A program made the translations under genes and the position numbers. From assembly GCA_964247055.1 (NCBI GenBank), contig OZ176056.1, positions 6,758,001 through 6,822,000 on the forward strand: a DNA stretch of 64,000 nucleotides, read 5' to 3'. The stretch comes from Paragordius varius (Eukaryota > Animalia > Nematomorpha). The notes below the pieces were generated by a model. It made no database searches and was not told the origin of the DNA. It saw only the letters and a program-made list of their open reading frames with translations. This document shows, in pieces, positions 4,501-43,300 of this stretch (position 1 is the first letter of the stretch; the number at the start of each line of letters is the position of its first letter).

Positions 4501-4946
4501 TTTTATACAATTTGCCACACTATTTAATTTTATGTTTCATTCAAAGATTTTTTCCCAAGTTAATAAACACTCCGTTGTCGCGATTTGGATTATCCAAGTA
4601 TTGTCAAATTTTGTTTACCCAGCCAAATTATTAATTAGTAAAATTCAAAGAAACCATTTAGGCTTTCCCTCTTTAATGTGAAACAATGTTATTAATTGAA
4701 TTAAATACATCCAGGACAAATTCTAAAACTTGCTTTCCCACCGTTTCAAATATTAGAGAAAAATGATAAATAAATAATCTGTATTCTCTCTCGGAAGTTC
4801 TATAGTAATAAATTTATGACATCAAAATGCAGAATCATTTTTCCGAAAAAAAAACAATTTACTAAATGATATTGATAACAATATTATATTAACGTCATTG
4901 AAAAATATTGGAAAAAAAACGTAACAGCAAAGGTAATATTGCAAAA

Positions 4947-6786
4947 ATGAAAACAGAATTTAACAAAGGAGCTATATGTACAAATTTAGTGCTATCACAC
5001 GTTAATATAAATAATAACACAAGGCAGCAGAATCAAAGGCATGTACAAAATATCAATAAACCGTTTTTATCGCCGCTTACAAGGAAAAAATTATCACATT
5101 CACCTAATATTGCATATTTTACATCTAATTTATTAAATCGAAATAACAGGGGTACACAACATCCCAAACATATTGATTCAAAGATTGGAAAAGTTAGATT
5201 TCATGATATAATAAAACATATCCAACGCAAAAAAATTATTTATCATTCAACACAAGGCTGGCCTCGATTAGTGAAACGAAATGTACCTCGTAATACATTT
5301 GTTGCCATATACGATGATGAGTATACTTATGGAAAAACAATTCCAATTAATCTCTCAACCACGACGCCAAAAAGCACCCCATCTAAATATTCAAGCCCGC
5401 CATCTCAGCTAAACAAACCCAATTCCGAAACATCTAAAACATTAAATCCAAAATTTACTGGCAAGTATATTAAAAGGAAAAAAATTATTGTAGGTAAAAC
5501 AACCACTTTACCAAACCTTCATACCATTAGTACTAATAGGCCCATACTTAGACGGATTAAAGTTAAAAAAATTAAACATATTCCATTTGCCACAACCATT
5601 AACGAAGAGTTTTTAACTACCGAAAATTTATTGTATGAAAATGGCACCGAGGAATCAGATGACAAAAATTTGCCAAATGAAAATAATCAAAACCAGGAAT
5701 CTGAAGAAGATAATAAATTAGAATCCTATACCGAAACTAATAAAGGTTCCAATCCAGAACAAGAAGAATTAGAGGAGGAGGAACAGACGGAACAACCGGT
5801 TATTAGACGAATCAAAAAAATTCGGGTTATTCGAAAAAAGAAACCAGAAAACTCTAAAGCAACAGAAGATATAGAAACTGAAAATCAGGGAGAAGAATTC
5901 TCTAAACCAACAGTCAAAGTAGTAAAATATAAACCCAAAAAACCTATTCGCCGGTCAACTATTATCGCAATTAAGGGTGAACGGTTAGCCACTTTAGTTA
6001 CACCTGAATACGCACAAAAAGTTTTTCCATCCTTAGGTTCCGAGCAAAACAAAAGTGGAGAAAATAAGCCTATTATAACGGCAACTACCAAATACATAAA
6101 TAAAGAAGGAAAAATGGTTATTCGCAAGAAAATTATTCGAAAAATAAAATTAACGCCTACCACGCCATTCGTTAGTGAATACGGCGTGAAAACTAGTAAC
6201 CCCAACATTGAATATGTCCCTGAAGGTGTTTTAGACGATGTAAACGAAAATCGACAACAATCTATGCCAGAGCAAGAAGAACCATATGGAGAAAATAATT
6301 TTGAGCCTAAGCCATTAAATGAGGCATCTACCTTGCGTCCCGAAACCGCTATGTACCGTAACATGATGCAAAACAACCAACCGAATCTGGGAATCATGGC
6401 GGCTATCCCCTCAAACGGTGCTATAGAAGAGATATTAATTACCAAACCACCCAAAGGGGCACGTAATAAGCTACCATCTTACAAAAACTATCAACAGTAT
6501 GCCTTGCAGCAACTGCCTACGAAAACAGATTTAGAGGCCCAACAATCGCAATCGTTTCAAATGACAAATCAAAGACCATCCGCCAGATCCGGAAAAATTC
6601 GTATGATCACTCCAGAAGATATTGAAGCACCTGTAGGATACGAGGAAATTCAGAAAAAAATAACAATAGCACCACCGGCATCAGCCAAGATTGGACAAAC
6701 GGCGAAGTCTCAAAAAGCGCCAGCTCATCATATGAGTGGCCAAGAATTCGCTCAAAAGCTTTTGAAGGCCAGTAAAAAAATACCAT
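4947..6786 (+). CDS. Giant first coding exon of the synaptotagmin gene; low-complexity, Lys/Arg/Pro/Glu-rich segment of about 613 aa
   Basis: The frame is open from 4902 to 6821 in highly AT-rich DNA. The first in-frame ATG is at 4947. The GTAAGT donor at 6787 is in the phase needed to join the TM exon. No signal peptide is visible. Confidence 0.75.
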
Positions 6787-8912
6787 GTAAGTCTTTTCTC
6801 CTTATTGTTGAATTTTATATATAAAGCATACTCATCCTTTTTATGCGATAAAATTATTTGGCTATCAATAATAATAAGAAAACGTTTTAATAGGCAATAT
6901 ATTTCAAGCTCATTTCCTGGCACTTTAACAATAGATTTTGACCACTACAATAAACCTTTTCGAAAATTATGGGTTCAATTATTAAAAACAAAATTTTTAT
7001 ATCGCAATTATTCTCATTTTTATCTGATAATATTTAAAATCTACCCTTGAATGTATGTTAACATAAAAAATCAATAAGTATCTCTGTTAAAGTACAACAC
7101 CAATTATGTACTTATATATGTTATGTAATGATAATAGTACCCCCTTGGGCATTGGTTGGTATAGTTGCTTTGTGCATTCTATTTGCTCTGTGTTGCTTAT
7201 ACTATTCATGTCGCAAACTTTTCCGCAAACGCAAAAAGGAAGGCAAAAAAGGACTCAAGGGTATAGTAGATCTAAAACAAGTGCAAGTCTTAGGAACTGG
7301 GCTTAAGGAAAAAGTAACTATGATATCTTACTCAATTTTTTTTTAAAACTAATATATCCGTTGTAATGATAAATAAAGGCGACTCAACCAGAACTACAAG
7401 ACTTAAAACCAAAACAAGTCATTCCAAGCGAGGAGGAAGAAGTGAAGTCAGATAAATCCCCAAAATATTTGGGAAAACTTAAATACAAACTTGATTACGA
7501 TTTCCAACAAAATCAGGTTACCATTCCTTCCATTAAAATTTTGTGTGTTGAATTTTTGTTAAAACGGTATTAATTAGTCCGAATATTTCTATATATGTTT
7601 CATTAAAAATCATTTAGCTCGCAGTAACGGTTAAAGAAGCCGTAGATTTACCAGGAATGGATATTTCAGGAACTTCCGATCCATATGTCAAGGTTTACCT
7701 CATGCCTGACAAGAAGAAAAAATTTGAGACCAAAGTTCACCGGAAAACACTCAATCCCATATTCAACGAGACGTTTGTTTTTAAGGTTAAATTTGATTTG
7801 ATATATATTTACGTTTTTAATCAAGGTGTCCTTACAAAAATAAAAAAGATGTTGCGTGCGCTTATAGGTTCCTTATTCCGAATTGGCGGGAAAAACTCTC
7901 ATATTTGCTGTTTATGATTTCGATCGCTTTTCCAAACACGATCAAATCGGGGAAGTTCGTTTACCACTCAAGCAAATAGATTTGGGCCAAATAGTCGAAG
8001 AAGAAAAGGAAATTACATCTGCACAGGTGGAGGAAGGGAAGGTTAATACCTAGTTTTGAAACAACCCTTTTATTTGATAAATAGTTATACATTTTCAAAA
8101 TTTTTCATATCTTCTTCCATATACAAAAGAATCAATTGGGTGACATATGCTTTTCACTCCGATATGTCCCTACCGCTGGAAAACTAACGATTGTGATTTT
8201 GGAGGCTAAAAATCTCAAAAAAATGGACGTTGGTGGATTATCAGGTATATAAGCCAAATCTTTATATATAATTCCATTAATAATAGAAATATCGCATATA
8301 TAATGTAATTTATAATGGGCAGATCCATATGTAAAGATTGCCTTAATGCAAAATGGTAAAAGACTCAAAAAGAAAAAGACAAGCATCAAAAAATGTACCC
8401 TCAATCCATACTACAATGAATCATTCACTTTTGAAGTTCCTTTCGAACAAATACAAGTATCATAATGAATTTTTTTTGTGCATTAAATGGTTAAATACAA
8501 TATGCACATTTATGTTGGTAATTATACATTTTTGACTGATTGTCAATACAGTAGCCCATGGTTAAAAACAACAACTGGTTATTGTTATGTTTTATTTATT
8601 ATATAACAAAACTTGTTTTATATCATATGATACTGTATTTCCAATTGGTCAACAATAATGTAAATTGGCTGTCAGATAAAGTGGATACTGTAAATTTAAT
8701 TTTTTTTTACTATTCTTATGTGAAATGGGTAGAAAGTCTCCCTAGTCATAACTGTGATAGATTATGACCGAATCGGTTCTTCAGAAGCTATTGGGCGAGT
8801 CGTTTTAGGCTGTAACGCTAAAGGGGCGGAATTGCGTCATTGGAGCGATATGTTGGCCCAACCGCGAAGACCCATTGCACTTTGGCATACTCTTCAAGAT
8901 ATTGATGAATAA
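4947..8912 (+). CDS. Syt1: Synaptotagmin-1-type Ca2+ sensor (TM, C2A, C2B) with a very long N-terminal exon; about 974 aa if translated from ATG 4947
   Basis: Hand-spliced exons: 4947-6786, 7138-7313, 7379-7516, 7618-7785, 7868-8041, 8130-8244, 8323-8456, 8733-8912. All introns are GT-AG and phases are consistent (351, 65, 101, 82, 88, 78, 276 nt). The exon 1/2 junction rebuilds [14 protein letters not shown], matching Syt1 KIPLPPWAL. C2A: [21 protein letters not shown]2B: [32 protein letters not shown]. The identity of the core is secure; the start codon is not. Confidence 0.93.
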
Positions 8913-10760: not shown

Positions 10761-13700
10761 TTAATTGCTACTTTGTAAAACTAATAATGCAAACACAAAT
10801 GAAATTAAAATTGACATACTTGTTATATGTTTATCAAAACATTGATATTTAAAAATATGTTGTATAGTTAATTTTACCAGTTTTGGTGGGTTATCAAATC
10901 CCCTTACACTTTCTGCGCCATAAACTAACATTGAGATACGCTTTAGCTGATATTCAGTTTCAATATCCATCAATCGAATAATATTTTCGTTAAAAAATAT
11001 TTTTGTTGTCATTTCAATAAAAATTTGGTCCTGGTATCCTAAGGCAGTCATGCGTCTAAAACTTGCATTCCTTTAATTTCATTATATATATAATAAATAA
11101 CGATGCTCTTTCATGGGTTTATTATTAGTAAATTTAAAAAAACAAATAATTATTATCAAATGGATCTATTGCTCCTGGGAATACGCCTTTATGTGGAATA
11201 TAAAAGATTGTAAAAATTGGAATCTATGATCTGCTCCCAGAATAAATGTGTAAGTACGGAATGGGAAAGAAGTAAGTTAGCGAAAAAATGGGACACTAGT
11301 TGACGCATTGCTGAAAATATAAACCACCCTGAAATAATTGCTTTGATGACCTAATTTTGGGGATGATCTTAACATCTTCAAATACGGGGCATACATTTTA
11401 ATACTTTAAAGGTGGGAAAAAAATAAAATGGTTTTTTATATGAATGAGTACTTTGTTAATTATGATTAATCAAAACATTTTTTCCTTATAATTTTAAGTT
11501 CAACTTTAACCGTGAAAATAATTTTCATTTATGGAATTAAAAATAGTCACGATGCTATAATATCGTTATTGTTTTGCTATCTTATAAATTTATATTATGT
11601 ATATTATAATTTATTGTTGTTGTTATAAGCTAGTCATGTAGTGACTCTTGGCTTTCTCATAAATTAGTGTTCTCCATTTTTGACGATCCTGTGCTTCTCT
11701 CAACAATTAAAGAAAAGTTCGGTTTGTTATTGATTTAAGCATGTCGATCCACCGCTTTTGGGGTCGGCCCCTTCTGCGGGTGCCATCTATCAACCCAAAA
11801 AGTAAGCTTTTTTCTAGCGAATCGGATCGCAGGATATGACCCAGATATTTTAGCTGTTTAAAGATTATTAAATCGTGAAGTAAAAATTTGGGTTTGATGA
11901 GGTTGAGGATATAAGAATTGGAGATGTGGGCTTTCCAGGAGATTCTCAATATTTTTCGAAAGCACTACAGTTGAAAAGAGTTTATGCGGGCTTTGTCAAT
12001 GGATTTGCATATCCATGATTTGGACCAATAAATTGCCACGGGGTATATCATCGCCTTCAGGATGGCAAGTTTGGTTGGAAGTCTTATGACCGACGAGTTC
12101 TAATTTTGGACAGTTTACCCATAGTAGCACGTCTCAAGCTAGCCGTGCTCGTATGCCGGGATCCGAGCTACCGTCGGATGTAATTATGGAGCCTAAATAT
12201 TTACAGTGATCGGTTAGTTCGATGGGGGAGTTATTGATTGTAAATGGTAGTTGTGGAGCGTTTAGGATCATTATTTTAGATTTAGCTGGGTTCAGCTTAA
12301 GACCCATCAAACTTGCTTCGATGGTGTTTAAAAGATAGGTCATGTCCGTGTGGGATTCTGACAAGAGAATGTGTCGTCGGCGGACCGGAGATTGCAAATA
12401 GTAAGACCACCCATCCGTGCCCCAATATGTTGGGGAAAGTTACAATTGCGTATTAAAGTTTCTGTGTATAAGTTAAATAGGAGGGGAGAAAGGACACATC
12501 CTTGTCTCACACCTCTGAGAATAGGAAACCAGTCGATGGGACCGAATTGGGTTTTAATCGCGGCTGTTTGTCTAGAATACAGCGATTGAAGTAAGAGTAC
12601 TATGTGCGGGGAAACTCCGGAGGATCGTAATATGCTCCATAGGCAGTCGTGGTTGATTGTATCAAATGCCATACTGAAGTCTAAAAAGCAGCAGTATAGA
12701 CTTTTCCCAAATTCATTGTATCTTCGAATTATTATATTAAGATTAACTATGTGATTAGTAGTGTTTCTCTTTGCTCTAAAGCCAGCCTGCACCTCAGATA
12801 TTTCATAGTCCAGCGAGGATGAGATTCTTTTGAGTATAATCTTGAGAAGAAGTTTGGATAGTTTATTAGTGATAGCGATCATTCTATAGTTCTGACAAAG
12901 ATGGGGATTTCCCTTTTTAAAAAAGGGTAGGAGAAAAGATTTAGTCCAATCATCCGGCCAAATACAGGTTGAAAAACTTTTTGTAAAAGCCCTGTTTAAT
13001 TATTTATGATTGAATTACGGGTTAAATTATTGGTATACATATCGCTATTTTAAAAATATTTTTTACAGTTAACTAAGCTAAAGAATATCTATATAGCAAT
13101 ACACTATTGTTAGATTAAAAATATATATTTATAGAAGATATATGCCCGAGGTGGCCAACCTTTTTTTACAATCGCTACCTTTTAAGGAGAAAATTTCACG
13201 CTGGCATTAATATTAAGTATTAAAAGATTTATTTTTCACTTACAAATGATGAATACACACCGTGTGCAAAAAAGAGGGTTAATTTTTTTTAAAATTTTTT
13301 TTCATGAGATGGCTTATGACGAGCGAATTCATTTGCCGCAAAATTTATTATTCGTTGACAACCTTTGAAATATTAAGAGAAAATCGAAATCGGGCAAAAA
13401 GTGAGAATTAAGGATAATTAAGTATATTGAGATATTATGATTTATTCATTTTAGGCTATATTTCTATATATAAATAGCCTAAAATCTATAGTTGGGATTC
13501 TACAAAATTCCAGCTAAAAAGATGGCGTATTCTTTTTTAACACCTAGAAGATAAAAATGTTTGTTAAAAAACTATATTAAAATATTTTTTTTAAATACTT
13601 ACTAGCTAAAAACTATTAAAAAAAATTTTAACATCCATTTCAGTAAAAAAACTTATATATCAAAATAACAAAATATATTGTTTTTTACATTATTTTCCCA

Positions 13701-36989: not shown

Positions 36990-39900
36990 GATATATTCAA
37001 ATTTGGACTTCGGAAGTTATTATTATAGCAAAGATCGTTGTCGATTTATTGCTTTTCGAAGGTATATTTTGTTTATTCGATTGTAAGCGAGTGCTGTTAG
37101 CTGTTGTAAAGAAAGATTGGTTTTGATTAGGTTTTCGATCCAGCGCATCTTGCAGCGTCCACGTTTCGTGGATCCTTCGACCTTGCATGTTATTAGTTGG
37201 AATTTCAAGTCATTAGCTCTGATAATGTGACCAAAGTATGATTATTTCATTTTGAGGCACATGCCGATCAGGTGTATCTCGGGATTTATTTTGTCAAAGA
37301 TTACGGTGTTCTTTATTTTGTCTTTCCAGGTTTGTAGTATCTTCCGCCAGCACCACATTTCAAAGGCGTTAATGTAAATTTCGTCATCCTTTTTTATTGT
37401 CCAACTTTCTGACGCGTATGGCATGAGTTAACTAATGGGACTTTTTGAGTTTGATGTCGTGTGAGGACCATAGTTTATTATATTCTATCATTTTTGATTT
37501 AGCGATTCCTATTCTGTTCTGATGTCGGGGTGCTGTTGTTAATCGTATTGATAAGACTGCCTAAATAAGTGTATTGGGAGGTGTTACATGCAAATTTGAA
37601 ATATATACTTTGGTTGTATATCATAATTTTCTGTGAGATTTGATGTTACATGCAAATTTGCAATATATACTTTGGTTGTATATCATAATTTTCTGTGAGA
37701 TTTGATGTTACATTCAAATTTGAAATATAAACTTTGGTTGTATATTATAATTTTCTGTGAGATTTGAATTGTATTATATTTGTATTTTTTTGGTACTATG
37801 TAAATTATCCTTTGCTACTAAAAATTTTATCGTTATAATGCAAAATATGTACACCTAAAATTAGTATATATATAAAGCACAAAAAAATCGAATAAATAAA
37901 TTTTCACGTTTCTTATATTTTTTTCTCTTCAAATTAATAGGATACTACTTCGATTTTTGGTTGTTAAAGGATAAATTGTTGTAATGATTCTGAGCGTTTA
38001 TATTCATAATTTTAGTTTTTTTGTAGTTGATCATCAGACCGAATTTTCGACATTCAGTTGAAAATTCTGTTAAGAGTTTTTTTAGGTTGTCCACTGAATT
38101 TGACAACAGCATAGTGAGGTGATGATAATGCCGGCGATGCTTATGCCATTAGCTTTATCTCTATTTCCTAATACACTTTCTATGCAAACGTTAAAAAGAG
38201 TCGGTGAGAGGACGCATTCTTGTCGTAAACCATTGTTCATTCGTATTCAATTTTGCGCCGTGTGGGGTTTTTATTTAATGATGAATTGGAGTAAAGGGAT
38301 TTGATGATGTTTATAATATAATTCAATACTCCAATCTGAGATAGTGCCATCCACAGCATGTCGTGCTTCACGCTGTCAAAGGCCTTTGAAAAATCAATGA
38401 AGCAGATATGGGTTTCTTTCTGAAATTCAATTTGTTTTTTAAATATCCAGCGTATATTGCTAATCATGTCTCTCTGCATCCGAAATTGGTTCTAAATCCC
38501 GCTTGGGTGTTAGAAAGTTCGGCTTCATTTATGCCTTGGATATGCCTGTGAATTATTTTGAGAAAACTTTTGAGGCTAGGTTGATAAGCGTTATAGTTCT
38601 ATAGTTGTTAAATGATTTAGGATCGCCTTTTTTGAAGATGGGGATGAGTATTAATTTGCACCAATCTTGGGGGAATGAGGCATGAGCAAATATCTTTTGG
38701 AATAAATCAGTTAGGATATGAATTGGGATAAAACGAATGAGTTCTGTTGGGATATCGTTTTACCCCTCCGATTTATTGTTTGGGTAATGGTTGGGCGCCC
38801 ATTCAACTTCTTCTTTGATGATCTGCGGGTCATGTTGATAGATATTACTATTTTTATCGGCGTTTGATAGGCTGGTGCCGTATAGCTTTAATACATATTG
38901 TTCCCATTGTTCCACCAGGGTTTTTTTGTCTGTAATGATATCTCCATCTTCCTTTCTCATTGGGCCTTTGTAGCTTTTAGCCTACGTGTTGCAATATGAT
39001 CTACTTTAGCAAAGTAGTTGTTGTTATATTTATCAGCCTTTTCTAATTTTGAGCACAGCTGATTGTAGGGATCATTTTTGTCATCCCGAGCGCTTTTTTG
39101 GAACTCTGCGTTAAGTGATTTGTCCTCTGCCGTATAATTATTGCGTTTTGATTGGCGCCGTTTGTCCGATAAATCTAAATTTTTTTTGTGATAGCTTAAT
39201 TTTGTTATGATGATATTTTTGAATAGGCATGCATTCTCTGGTTGAAGTTCCCGTGATATTTTGTATTGTTTCCCAAAGATTTTCAGTGTCATCGTCAATT
39301 TCGGGTGTTTTGAATCTGTTTTCGAGTAACAAAGGAACCTCGGGGTCATAGCAAAAAATCTAATTTGGGATTATGCAGAGATTTTAGTTTGCGTGAGAGT
39401 ACTGGTTTAATTTTAAGTTTAGCAACAAGGGGATTATGATCAGAATAACAGTCGGAACCAGGGTAGGTTTTTACGTTCATAAATGAAGATTTATATTTTT
39501 GCATACCGAGAATAAAGTGGATTTGGTTTCTGTGCCTCTTGCAAGGTGAGGTCCATGTGTATAGCCTTCTCTTAGGTTGTTGGAAAAAGGAGTTTGAGAT
39601 GAAGAATTTATGTTCGCTGCAAAATTCTATGAGGCGGTCGCCTCTATTGTTTTTGTTTCCCAGTCTTTTCCCACCAGTGATTTGGTGTGTATTATCAATA
39701 CCTACTGTCGCGTTAAGGTCGCCCAATACAAATATCATGTCTCTTTTGGGAACTTTCTTAATAGCTGAGCTGAGGGCCTCTTAAAATTGTTCGGAATCTT
39801 CTTCGTTGTTAGAGTTAGAAGGAGCATAGATTTAGAATATTGTTTTTGATTGTGGAGACGAGTTATATCGAAGTGATGTTATGCGATCGCTGTGTGTATG

Positions 39901-40345: not shown

Positions 40346-43300
40346 TCGGTGATAAATGGACTTTATGTTATTATCTTCATCAATTCATTGTCAGTTTTAT
40401 CATTCGTAAGATCATTAGAATTACAAGCACACATGCATTCTACAGAACATACAACAAAATTTTCAACGACAGTTTTTTATGCCCAATTATATTATTCCCT
40501 AAAAACCATTCTTAAACATCAATGGACATATCATACTGTTTCTATTGATTCTTATATCTCACTACACCACCACTAAGCCAAATTCCTACATGGAAAGCAG
40601 TAATTCTAAAATAAGCTCTCGTAATTTACCAATAAATATGGCGGCATGGAATATACGTGGCAGTTTAGATAACAAATTGGATATAATAGTTCGCGAGATG
40701 AGTTTGTACCATGAGTTAGGGCTGTCGGAGATTCATATGCAACATAACTTACACAAAATATACGACAATTATTCGTTTTATAACTCAGGCGGTGAACTCA
40801 AACGAAATGAATGCGGTTTTTTAATATCGAATTATCTAGCCAAACATACCGATATATATAGACCTATCTCCGATCGAATTATATCCCTACGAATTAACAC
40901 GAGACCCCAGGCTATAACAATATATCAAATCTATGCCCCACGAGTGTCTCATCCGAAGATGAATGCGAAAAGTTCTATAACAGGTTATAAATGGCTCTCT
41001 GTGAAACATCCAAAAAAGACATTACTTTCATCATCGGCGATTTTAACGCTATCATAGCTAACGATAAAACAGACAAGGTCACTGATGGAAAAGGCCTTGG
41101 TAAAGTCAAAAACCCCCGTGGTGAAAGGCTAATTGATTTTTGCCCAACACAATCTCTTTATAGCGAACTCGTTTTTACAGCCTAACAGACGGCTCTACAC
41201 CTGGACCTCACAGTGTCGTAAACACAGGAATCAAATAGATTATATATTGGGAATGCAAAAATACAAAAGCTCATTTTAAAACATCCGGTGATACTCGAGT
41301 GCAGACTGCAACTCAGATCATAACCTATTAATGGCCAAAATCAAAATAAAGCTACAACACAACCGCTAACAAACTTTTCCAAAACTAAATTGAACTACAA
41401 ACTTTTACCTGCCGATTTCACTCCAATCCTTGACAATAAATTTGAATCCTTAAATTACGAAACATTGAACACAGATGACCTTTGGTCAACTATCCACAAA
41501 ATTACACCGAAACAGCCAAAGAAAATATACCCCCTGGCACAACTAATAACTAAAAATTTACCATATCACAGCATCGACTTAATTGAACAGAGAAGAGTAG
41601 CAAAATCCAAGGGCACTCCCCCTGAGTACAAAAATATTAATAATGAACTACAAAAAAGCATAAGATCCGACAAAGAATCTCATTATAATACAATCTACGT
41701 TAACCTAGAGCAAGCTGCTAAACTTAATCACAACTACTTCTCTTACATTAAAGACATTCAACGGCGCAAAAAACAAATGTAGAAGGTCCTAGGTCTCATT
41801 CAAACGGAAAACTTCTAACTGATAAGAAAGAAGTAATTAAACTTTGGGAAGAATGCATCCAAAATTTATTCACAAAACAATCAACTATAATCGCCACGAA
41901 CCTTGAACAAACTTATGACCCACCAATACTAAAAGAAGAAATTGAATGGGCCCTGAGGCACTCATCAACCGGCAAAGCAGAGGGATATAATGACATCCCT
42001 ACAGAGCTACAAAGGCACATTCCCATAAAATTAATTCTTTTATTATTCCAAAAATACTTCAGTGATGCAACATTCCCGGCGGACTGGAACAAATCACTAT
42101 CCCAATATTTAAAAAGGGCGATCCTACCGCACAATAGCATTAATCTATCAAACCTTAAAAATGTTCTTAAAAATAATTCAAAACAGTCAACAAACATATG
42201 TCAACCCGGAAATCTCAATGACGCAAGCAGGCTTTAGAGAAAAAAGATGATGCCGAGACATGATCTCAAACATTAGATGGATAATGGAAAAAAACTGTGA
42301 TTTCCCAAATGAGCTACACCTATGCTTAGTGGATTTCTCTAAAGCCTTCGATACCGTTCAACATGATATTCTCTCGAAGGCCCTTAAACAATTAGGAGTT
42401 TCCGATCACTTAAAACTAATTAAATCCATATACTCCAACTCCTACCTATCACTTAACACCCCGTGGCCCGACCTCTAAGAATCCAATGAACATACAAGGC
42501 TGCATTTTATCCCCCATGTTGTTCAACATATATTTGGAATGTATCATGAAGGATCTTAATCTGCCAGGAATAAAAGTAGGGGGTCACACTCTGACGACTC
42601 TCCACTACGCAGACGACACGATTATCTTAGCAAATTCACAAACAAACCTCGAAAACAGTCTCCGAACTTTTATAAATGTGTGCAAAAAATACAATCTTAC
42701 ATTAAACCTCAACAAAACTAAAATTTTACATATCAACTCCCCTCATTCCTATGACTCGCTTCGGATAAATGGCGAAACAATTCGAGTAGTCAACGAATAC
42801 ACATACCTTGGAAGCATTATGAATAACTCAAGCTCCAGTTCCCAAGAAATAAGAAGACGCATAGCTACCGCCAAATGCGTTCTAGCCTCACACTACAAGA
42901 TATGGAAATCTCATGACATAAACCTAGGGTAAAAATTCAACTAATAAACACATTTCCTATCATGTTATACGGATGTGAAAGCTGGACTATCAAAAGTGAA
43001 GACGAAAAAGAATCAACGCTTTTGAAATGTTTTGCTGGAGAAAAATATTTGGTATAACATGGGAGGACAAAATAAAAAACATCGACATCGTAAATAAAAT
43101 TAACGCACAAACAACGCTTCGGGATAAAATAATAAAACAAAAATTCGGTTACTTTGGACACATTATTCGGGGACATTCTTTGGAAAAGGATATTATGTTA
43201 GGAAAAGTAAATGGCAAGAGAGGAAGAGTCGAAGACGTATTCGCTGAATAGACGAAATCTTATCACTTTCCAAATTGTCACTGCAAAAACTATTTCAAAA

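Follow-up and report, generated by a model that had tools for sequence, protein, structure and literature searches.

Here, we examined a 64,000-nucleotide stretch of the genome of the hairworm Paragordius varius (GenBank assembly GCA_964247055.1, contig OZ176056.1, positions 6,758,001 to 6,822,000 of the forward strand), hereafter the window, which carries a gene for synaptotagmin-1 (Syt1) whose apparent first coding exon is an open frame of 613 codons. Syt1 is among the most conserved and best-studied synaptic proteins, and its luminal domain, usually treated as dispensable, is, to our knowledge, short in every species studied. On balance, we favor the interpretation that the hairworm gene encodes a real, lineage-specific enlargement of the luminal N-domain of Syt1, contained in one giant first exon.

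A long coding frame ahead of the membrane anchor

Between positions 4902 and 6821 of the forward strand, 640 codons follow one another without a stop, the longest open frame in all six frames of the window; the next longest comprise 219 codons, in a reverse-transcriptase relic, and 197 codons, in the antisense shadow of the long frame itself. Within 4947-6785, there is no stop in 613 codons, as against 39 and 61 stops in the other two sense frames, and the probability of a stop-free frame, estimated from the local base composition, is ~1e-19. Among randomized copies, the mean length of the longest open frame was 76 codons over 200 shuffles, with a maximum of 144, and 82 codons over 500 first-order Markov simulations, with a maximum of 161. 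The guanine-plus-cytosine (GC) content is ~0.36 within the frame compared with 0.23-0.30 in its surroundings, and base frequencies at codon positions 1, 2 and 3 show an asymmetry of the coding type (G: 0.23, 0.10 and 0.14; T: 0.15, 0.22 and 0.30). Given the complete lack of stops, the randomized controls and the codon-position bias, the long frame is therefore coding sequence, or was so until very recently, and the preliminary description of this DNA, which had singled out a 1.84-kb stop-free exon encoding a 613-residue extension, is borne out on this point. Another open frame, of 189 residues, lies antisense to the long exon (5885-6454, reverse strand); it has no Pfam match and is most likely a shadow of the coding strand.

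Gene structure and the join between exons 1 and 2

The features of the gene, all on the forward strand, are as follows.

4899 to 4901, forward: in-frame stop bounding the open frame on the 5′ side, 15 codons ahead of the first ATG
4908 to 6824, forward: open reading frame as listed, containing the long exon
4947 to 6786, forward: putative first coding exon of giant size, with 613 codons and the initial base of a split Leu codon
5469 to 6152, forward: four long hydrophobic/basic blocks (residues 175-181, 200-213, 285-299 and 391-402) and an acidic tract (residues 271-282)
6738 to 6776, forward: predicted juxtamembrane helix (residues 598-610), the sole part that positionally matches the first Syt1 exon of another animal
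6787 to 7137, forward: intron 1, 351 nucleotides, GTAAGT...TAATAG, phase 1
7138 to 7313, forward: exon 2, completing the Leu codon and encoding PPW, the membrane anchor and clusters of Cys and of Lys/Arg; present once in the genome
7379 to 7516, forward: exon 3, acidic linker of 46 codons with an LDYDFQ motif at its end
7618 to 7785, forward: exon 4, N-terminal half of C2A, including Ca2+ loop 1 (Pfam C2, expectation value (E) 3.7e-20)
7868 to 8041, forward: exon 5, C-terminal half of C2A, including loop 3 DFDRFSKHD (best PDB match Syt1, E 1e-22)
8130 to 8244, forward: exon 6, beginning of C2B (38 codons and 1 further base), as read from the sequence
8323 to 8456, forward: exon 7, central part of C2B, including the polybasic strand KRLKKKK (Pfam C2, E 1.7e-11)
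8733 to 8912, forward: exon 8, end of C2B and the TAA stop (best PDB match Syt1, E 1.7e-25)

The introns between exons 2 and 8 measure 65-276 nucleotides and are bounded by GT..AG throughout. The donor of exon 1 (CCA T/GTAAGT at 6786/6787) is the nearest to the consensus among the donors checked in the gene, the others reading GTAACT, GTTAAA and GTTAAT. Joined in phase 1 to the acceptor of exon 2 (taatag/TA CCC CCT TGG at 7137/7138), it yields K-I-P-L-P-P-W-A-L followed by the anchor, precisely the in-phase junction and the rebuilt KIPLPPWAL motif that the earlier reading had proposed. Summed over all exons, the protein would comprise ~974 residues, 613 of them from the first exon. Intron 1 itself contains an in-frame TAA (6822-6824), at which translation of an intron-retaining transcript would stop after 12 further codons, and an ATG (7128) that lies ten bases ahead of the acceptor, in frame with the anchor exon. 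The product of this ATG would read M-I-I-V-P-P-W-A-L..., that is, a Syt1 nearly devoid of a luminal part; out-of-frame ATGs are located upstream of it, at 7106 and ~7119.

The position of intron 1 has a counterpart elsewhere. In the Syt1 gene on a metagenome contig from another animal (L002), the first coding exon, of only 82 codons, ends in ...KEFAEKIGDKMH G/gt and the next exon begins with ag/TT CCA TAC TGG; a phase-1 intron two residues before the conserved Trp is thus common to the two genes. As loci of close relatives, contig L005 (43-46% GC) and contigs L002 and L003 were rejected, and they served only to document the conserved intron and the 82-codon first exon. That luminal exon of L002 (L002:766-1012) encodes a run of Asp, then seven Tyr and more acidic residues, a candidate tyrosine-sulfation cluster.

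The downstream exons encode the only Syt1 of the genome

Pfam C2 matches were obtained in four exons of the gene, and for the C2A and C2B exons, the top PDB matches are chains of Syt1, ahead of those of Syt5, Syt7 and Syt3; in these comparisons, the Syt1 exons were searched one by one. The anchor in exon 2, preceded by prolines and trailed by Cys and Lys/Arg clusters, reads as a single anchor of the Syt1 type. Among the Ca2+-binding elements, C2A retains MD..SD and loop 3, DFDRFSKHD, the latter aligning identically to the Syt1 ligands, and C2B retains MD..SD (across the 8244/8323 junction) and DYD in loop 3, DYDRIGSSE. Thus, the claim that the acidic Ca2+ ligands of both C2 domains are intact holds for C2A and for most of C2B but not to the letter, given that the fifth acidic position of C2B loop 3 is Glu here and Asp in rat Syt1, a conservative change.

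No second copy of the membrane-anchor exon exists in the genome. The C2A most similar to that of the window gene, at 63% identity, belongs to a Syt7-like gene on contig C7 at 5.17 Mb (5163000-5172999, minus strand). The window gene is the only Syt1-type gene of this genome. Its C2A loop reads DLPGMD-SGTS, as is likewise the case in several other contigs.

Composition, motifs and predicted structure of the extension

The extension is richest in K, E, N, I, T and P, contains one Cys and one Trp, and has a net charge of +35. The alternation of polybasic blocks with an acidic tract that had been noticed from the start is readily located, down to every named motif: IKRKKII at residues 175-181, RRIKVKKIK at 202-210 and further blocks at 286-299 and 391-402, with the acidic tract at 271-282. 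All polybasic blocks fall within the first 402 codons. The hydrophobic/basic blocks recur five or six times, mostly behind an N/T-x-P motif, and follow a degenerate pattern, 'N/T-x-P ... R-[RK]-I-K-K-I', with acidic spacers. Three RKKII motifs stem from near-identical 15-mers (87-100% identity; 5226-5240, 5475-5489 and 6123-6137), the first two of which share a 23-nucleotide match and lie 249 nucleotides apart. These similarities suggest an old internal duplication; self-alignment of the extension is borderline (top score 48, against a 99th percentile of 44 in the null distribution; 325 pairs). All four of the previously described sequons are in place as well (NNT at residue 23, NLS at 135, NGT at 232 and NKS at 368), albeit without enrichment, as the composition alone leads one to expect 7.3 +/- 2.5.

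In the single-sequence AlphaFold2 model, the extension is almost wholly disordered (mean predicted local distance difference test score (pLDDT) 38.6). The only confident parts are a predicted beta-hairpin at residues 376-399 (pLDDT ~84) and a predicted juxtamembrane helix at residues 598-610 (pLDDT ~82). No 19-residue window of the extension attains the hydropathy of a membrane span (maximum 1.21).

Only the last ~15-75 residues of exon 1 appear to be of the normal Syt1 luminal type. The proposed resemblance of the end of the exon to the juxtamembrane segment of Syt1 stands as far as the positional match and the predicted helix are concerned; at the level of sequence it is weak, consisting of a single local similarity between this exon and the first exon of L002 (QEFAQKL versus KEFAEKI, pairwise E=0.23), and in the PDB, neither the last 62 residues of exon 1 nor the anchor exon finds a match at E<=10.

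Searches for relatives of the extension

No relative of the extension was detected in any of the collections searched. Pfam assigns the 613-residue exon to no family; a word-index protein search produced no match for the whole exon at E<=1e-3 and none for residues 530-613 at E<=10; and neither a full HMMER scan of 1.84 billion representatives nor the JGI metagenome contigs yielded a relative. The ESM Atlas returned only scores of <=0.81 for the extension, along with a low recognition value. In the 110.6-Mb assembly of the animal itself, the extension is single copy, with no paralog, and hence is not the open frame of a repeat or transposon. Our literature search turned up neither an account of a long luminal Syt1 nor any treatment of a hairworm synaptotagmin.

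Two other identities were considered for the extension. A captured transposon or viral open frame upstream of Syt1 was rejected in view of the single copy, the lack of a Pfam match and the lack of any match among the 1.84 billion representatives. A neuropeptide or prohormone precursor was rejected as well: there is no signal peptide, the basic residues lie inside the hydrophobic/basic blocks instead of flanking repeated peptides, and the repeats are borderline.

Translation start and the proposed route into the lumen

The first ATG of the frame, at 4947, has the context AAAATG (GCAAAAATGA) and is located 15 codons past the upstream stop. There is no further Met up to codon 390; later ones include codons 539 (CAAATG), 553 and 596. 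The preliminary description had offered an internal start as one way out. Alone, however, an internal start does not explain the open frame, because nothing would keep the ~390-590 codons upstream of it free of stops, and the frame is open throughout.

In the scenario that we favor, translation most likely begins at ATG 4947, and exon 1, as part of one transcription unit with the remainder of the gene, would be spliced at 6786/7138 onto the membrane-anchor exon. The resulting protein would consist of an ordinary Syt1 cytoplasmic part (linker, C2A and C2B) behind the signal-anchor and an N-domain enlarged to ~614 residues from the ~60-100 that are usual; the addition, polycationic and low in complexity, is probably lineage-specific and unfolded. 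The anchor may pull this extension into the lumen of the endoplasmic reticulum (ER), as in other synaptotagmins, because the extension appears to be unfolded and the anchor retains both its preceding prolines and the lysine cluster that follows. From there on, the extension would reside inside the vesicle and become exposed at the cell surface after fusion.

Of these steps, we regard the luminal topology as the weakest. In mouse Syt II, translocation of the N-domain depends critically on prolines that precede the hydrophobic region and on lysines clustered behind it (PMC2175286), and, according to the summary in PMC2373506 of the work of Kida et al. 2005, unfolded N-domains of >200 residues cross the ER membrane with the Syt II signal-anchor. 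Both determinants are kept in the hairworm gene, with IPLPPW before the anchor and a Lys cluster after it. Because the extension is predicted to be disordered and these determinants are kept, it seems to fit the known translocation mechanism in kind. The earlier objection that, lacking a signal peptide, a domain this large and basic could hardly be translocated is thereby weakened, although length and charge still count in its favor.

A more ambitious version of the scenario, in which the long form is the main Syt1 of the animal and its ~600-residue unfolded polycation acts in the vesicle lumen as a polyelectrolyte or is cut by proteases, appears rather unlikely to us. As a polyelectrolyte, the extension could bind or buffer anionic cargo, for example, ATP or glutamate. 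Alternatively, proteases of the secretory pathway might cut at the Lys/Arg clusters, releasing fragments, or leaving a new surface domain after fusion.

Alternative explanations

Several observations weigh against an enlarged luminal domain. There is no homologue of the extension in the collections searched. The N-terminus lacks a signal-peptide-like core (the best Kyte-Doolittle mean over 12 residues is 1.35). No N-domain with experimentally demonstrated translocation by a signal-anchor exceeds about one-third of the length proposed here, and the net charge of +35 disfavors a luminal location by the positive-inside rule. With an internal start at Met 539 or Met 553, the luminal domain would be of canonical size. 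Finally, the exon is not uniform: GC content is 0.30-0.35 over codons 1-400, with codons 1 to ~200 the AT-richest, and rises to 0.40-0.45 over codons 400-613, which resemble the downstream Syt1 exons; the difference in G between codon positions 1 and 2 (G1-G2) likewise changes between codons 1-200 and 400-613. Such a shift would fit a fusion of two units that are still separately expressible.

These last features are among the grounds for the main alternative, namely, that the locus gives rise to two products, which we consider possible but not likely. Under this explanation, the working neuronal Syt1 would be a short form made from an internal Met or promoter, or from ATG 7128, and the long frame would be a once-separate orphan gene, fused in frame. 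Starts at codons 539, 553 or 596 would leave an N-domain of 18-75 residues, which for Met 539 and Met 553 is of the usual size and in line with the 82-codon first exon of the other animal; the promoter would lie in, or just upstream of, the 3′ end of the long frame. The long frame would then be expressed only as a minor isoform, or as a soluble, basic protein of 625 residues through retention of intron 1 and termination at TAA 6822. The stop 12 codons into the intron, the ATG in frame with the anchor exon, the confinement of the polybasic blocks to the first 402 codons and the rise in GC content at about codon 400 all agree with such an arrangement. Conversely, the frame is continuous, with no stop between the putative units, the donor of exon 1 is stronger than the other donors checked, there is no independent indication of an internal promoter, and ATG 7128 is preceded by the two out-of-frame ATGs. 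Moreover, even in this case, the long frame must still be translated in some form.

There is a slimmer chance that a hidden upstream exon supplies a start codon and a cleavable signal peptide, being spliced to an acceptor such as the AG at 4926-4927 or at 4988-4989 (aaatttag), both within 45 nucleotides of ATG 4947, one on either side. The large domain would then enter the lumen as that of an ordinary type I membrane protein; this explanation is a variant of the favored one. The size and basic charge of the extension, its non-hydrophobic N-terminus, and the similarity of aaatttag/TG to the acceptor of exon 4 (atcatttag/CT) are compatible with it. However, ATG 4947 stands in a good context right after the upstream stop, the 4.9 kb upstream contain no open frame of >73 codons and nothing coding-like, and Syt1 elsewhere uses a signal-anchor, the determinants of which are conserved here.

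That the frame is not translated at all, being a product of the A-rich, T-poor composition or a recently dead remnant, is very improbable: the lack of homologues and of a Pfam family, the low complexity and the low ESM Atlas recognition value would suit it, but the 640 codons far exceed anything in the randomized copies, both other sense frames are riddled with stops, and a consensus donor stands exactly at the end of the frame, in the phase that the next exon requires, so that a chance origin is essentially excluded.

Comparison with known systems

The hairworm gene shares with Syt1 and Syt2 of other animals IPLPPW before the anchor, the Cys and Lys clusters after it, the acidic linker, C2A and C2B domains with Ca2+ loops, the KRLKKKK strand and a C-terminal WHTL, along with best PDB matches to Syt1; with the Syt1 gene on L002, it further shares the position and phase of the intron before the anchor. 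The short luminal N-domain that typifies the class is, by contrast, absent if the whole of exon 1 is translated: ~614 residues here, compared with ~60 in mouse Syt II (PMC2175286) and an exon of 82 codons in L002. Furthermore, the added part is basic and without relatives, and the fifth C2B ligand differs, as described above.

Low-complexity insertions and extensions are carried by the proteins of AT-rich genomes, such as those of Plasmodium and Dictyostelium. With its genome of ~28% GC, the hairworm invites this comparison, and the extension, rich in K, N, I and E, predicted to be disordered, lineage-specific and attached to a conserved protein, resembles them. Unlike them, it forms one 1.8-kb block, would lie on the luminal side of a vesicle protein, and is built of recurring hydrophobic/basic blocks rather than homopolymers.

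A further parallel is offered by engineered constructs in which Syt II was given a long N-domain (Kida, Mihara and Sakaguchi 2005, cited in PMC2373506) and which likewise combine a long hydrophilic N-domain with a signal-anchor and no signal peptide. As they are described in PMC2373506, those constructs are artificial, a little over 200 residues long and not polycationic, whereas the hairworm domain is natural, about three times longer and equipped with Lys/Arg clusters.

Elsewhere in the window, there are broken open frames of retroelements at 12340-12999 (reverse strand), 38957-39780 (reverse strand) and 40503-42932 (forward strand), with RVT_1 matches at 12340-12882 (E 1.4e-20) and 42486-42932 (E 1.8e-17); the neighboring open frames match no family.

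Implications

Whether the locus makes the long form or only the short one, automated annotation is likely to be wrong for this Syt1 gene. If only the short form is made, the locus would instead exemplify an orphan gene that overlaps the 5′ end of Syt1 or has become fused to it in frame.

If, as we favor, the locus produces the long form, then a signal-anchor is able in vivo to move a domain of >600 residues with a charge of +35 through the ER membrane, which is roughly threefold the length achieved in vitro and contrary to the positive-inside tendency. The synaptic vesicle would then hold a bulky luminal load, which can be put roughly at ~1 MDa per vesicle, with several hundred positive charges, if Syt1 is present in a mammalian-like number of ~15 copies. 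It would also follow that a core synaptic gene can acquire an orphan sequence as a graft. The hairworm Syt1 would thus amount to a natural test of how much luminal load the Ca2+ sensor of a vesicle, and its signal-anchor, can bear.

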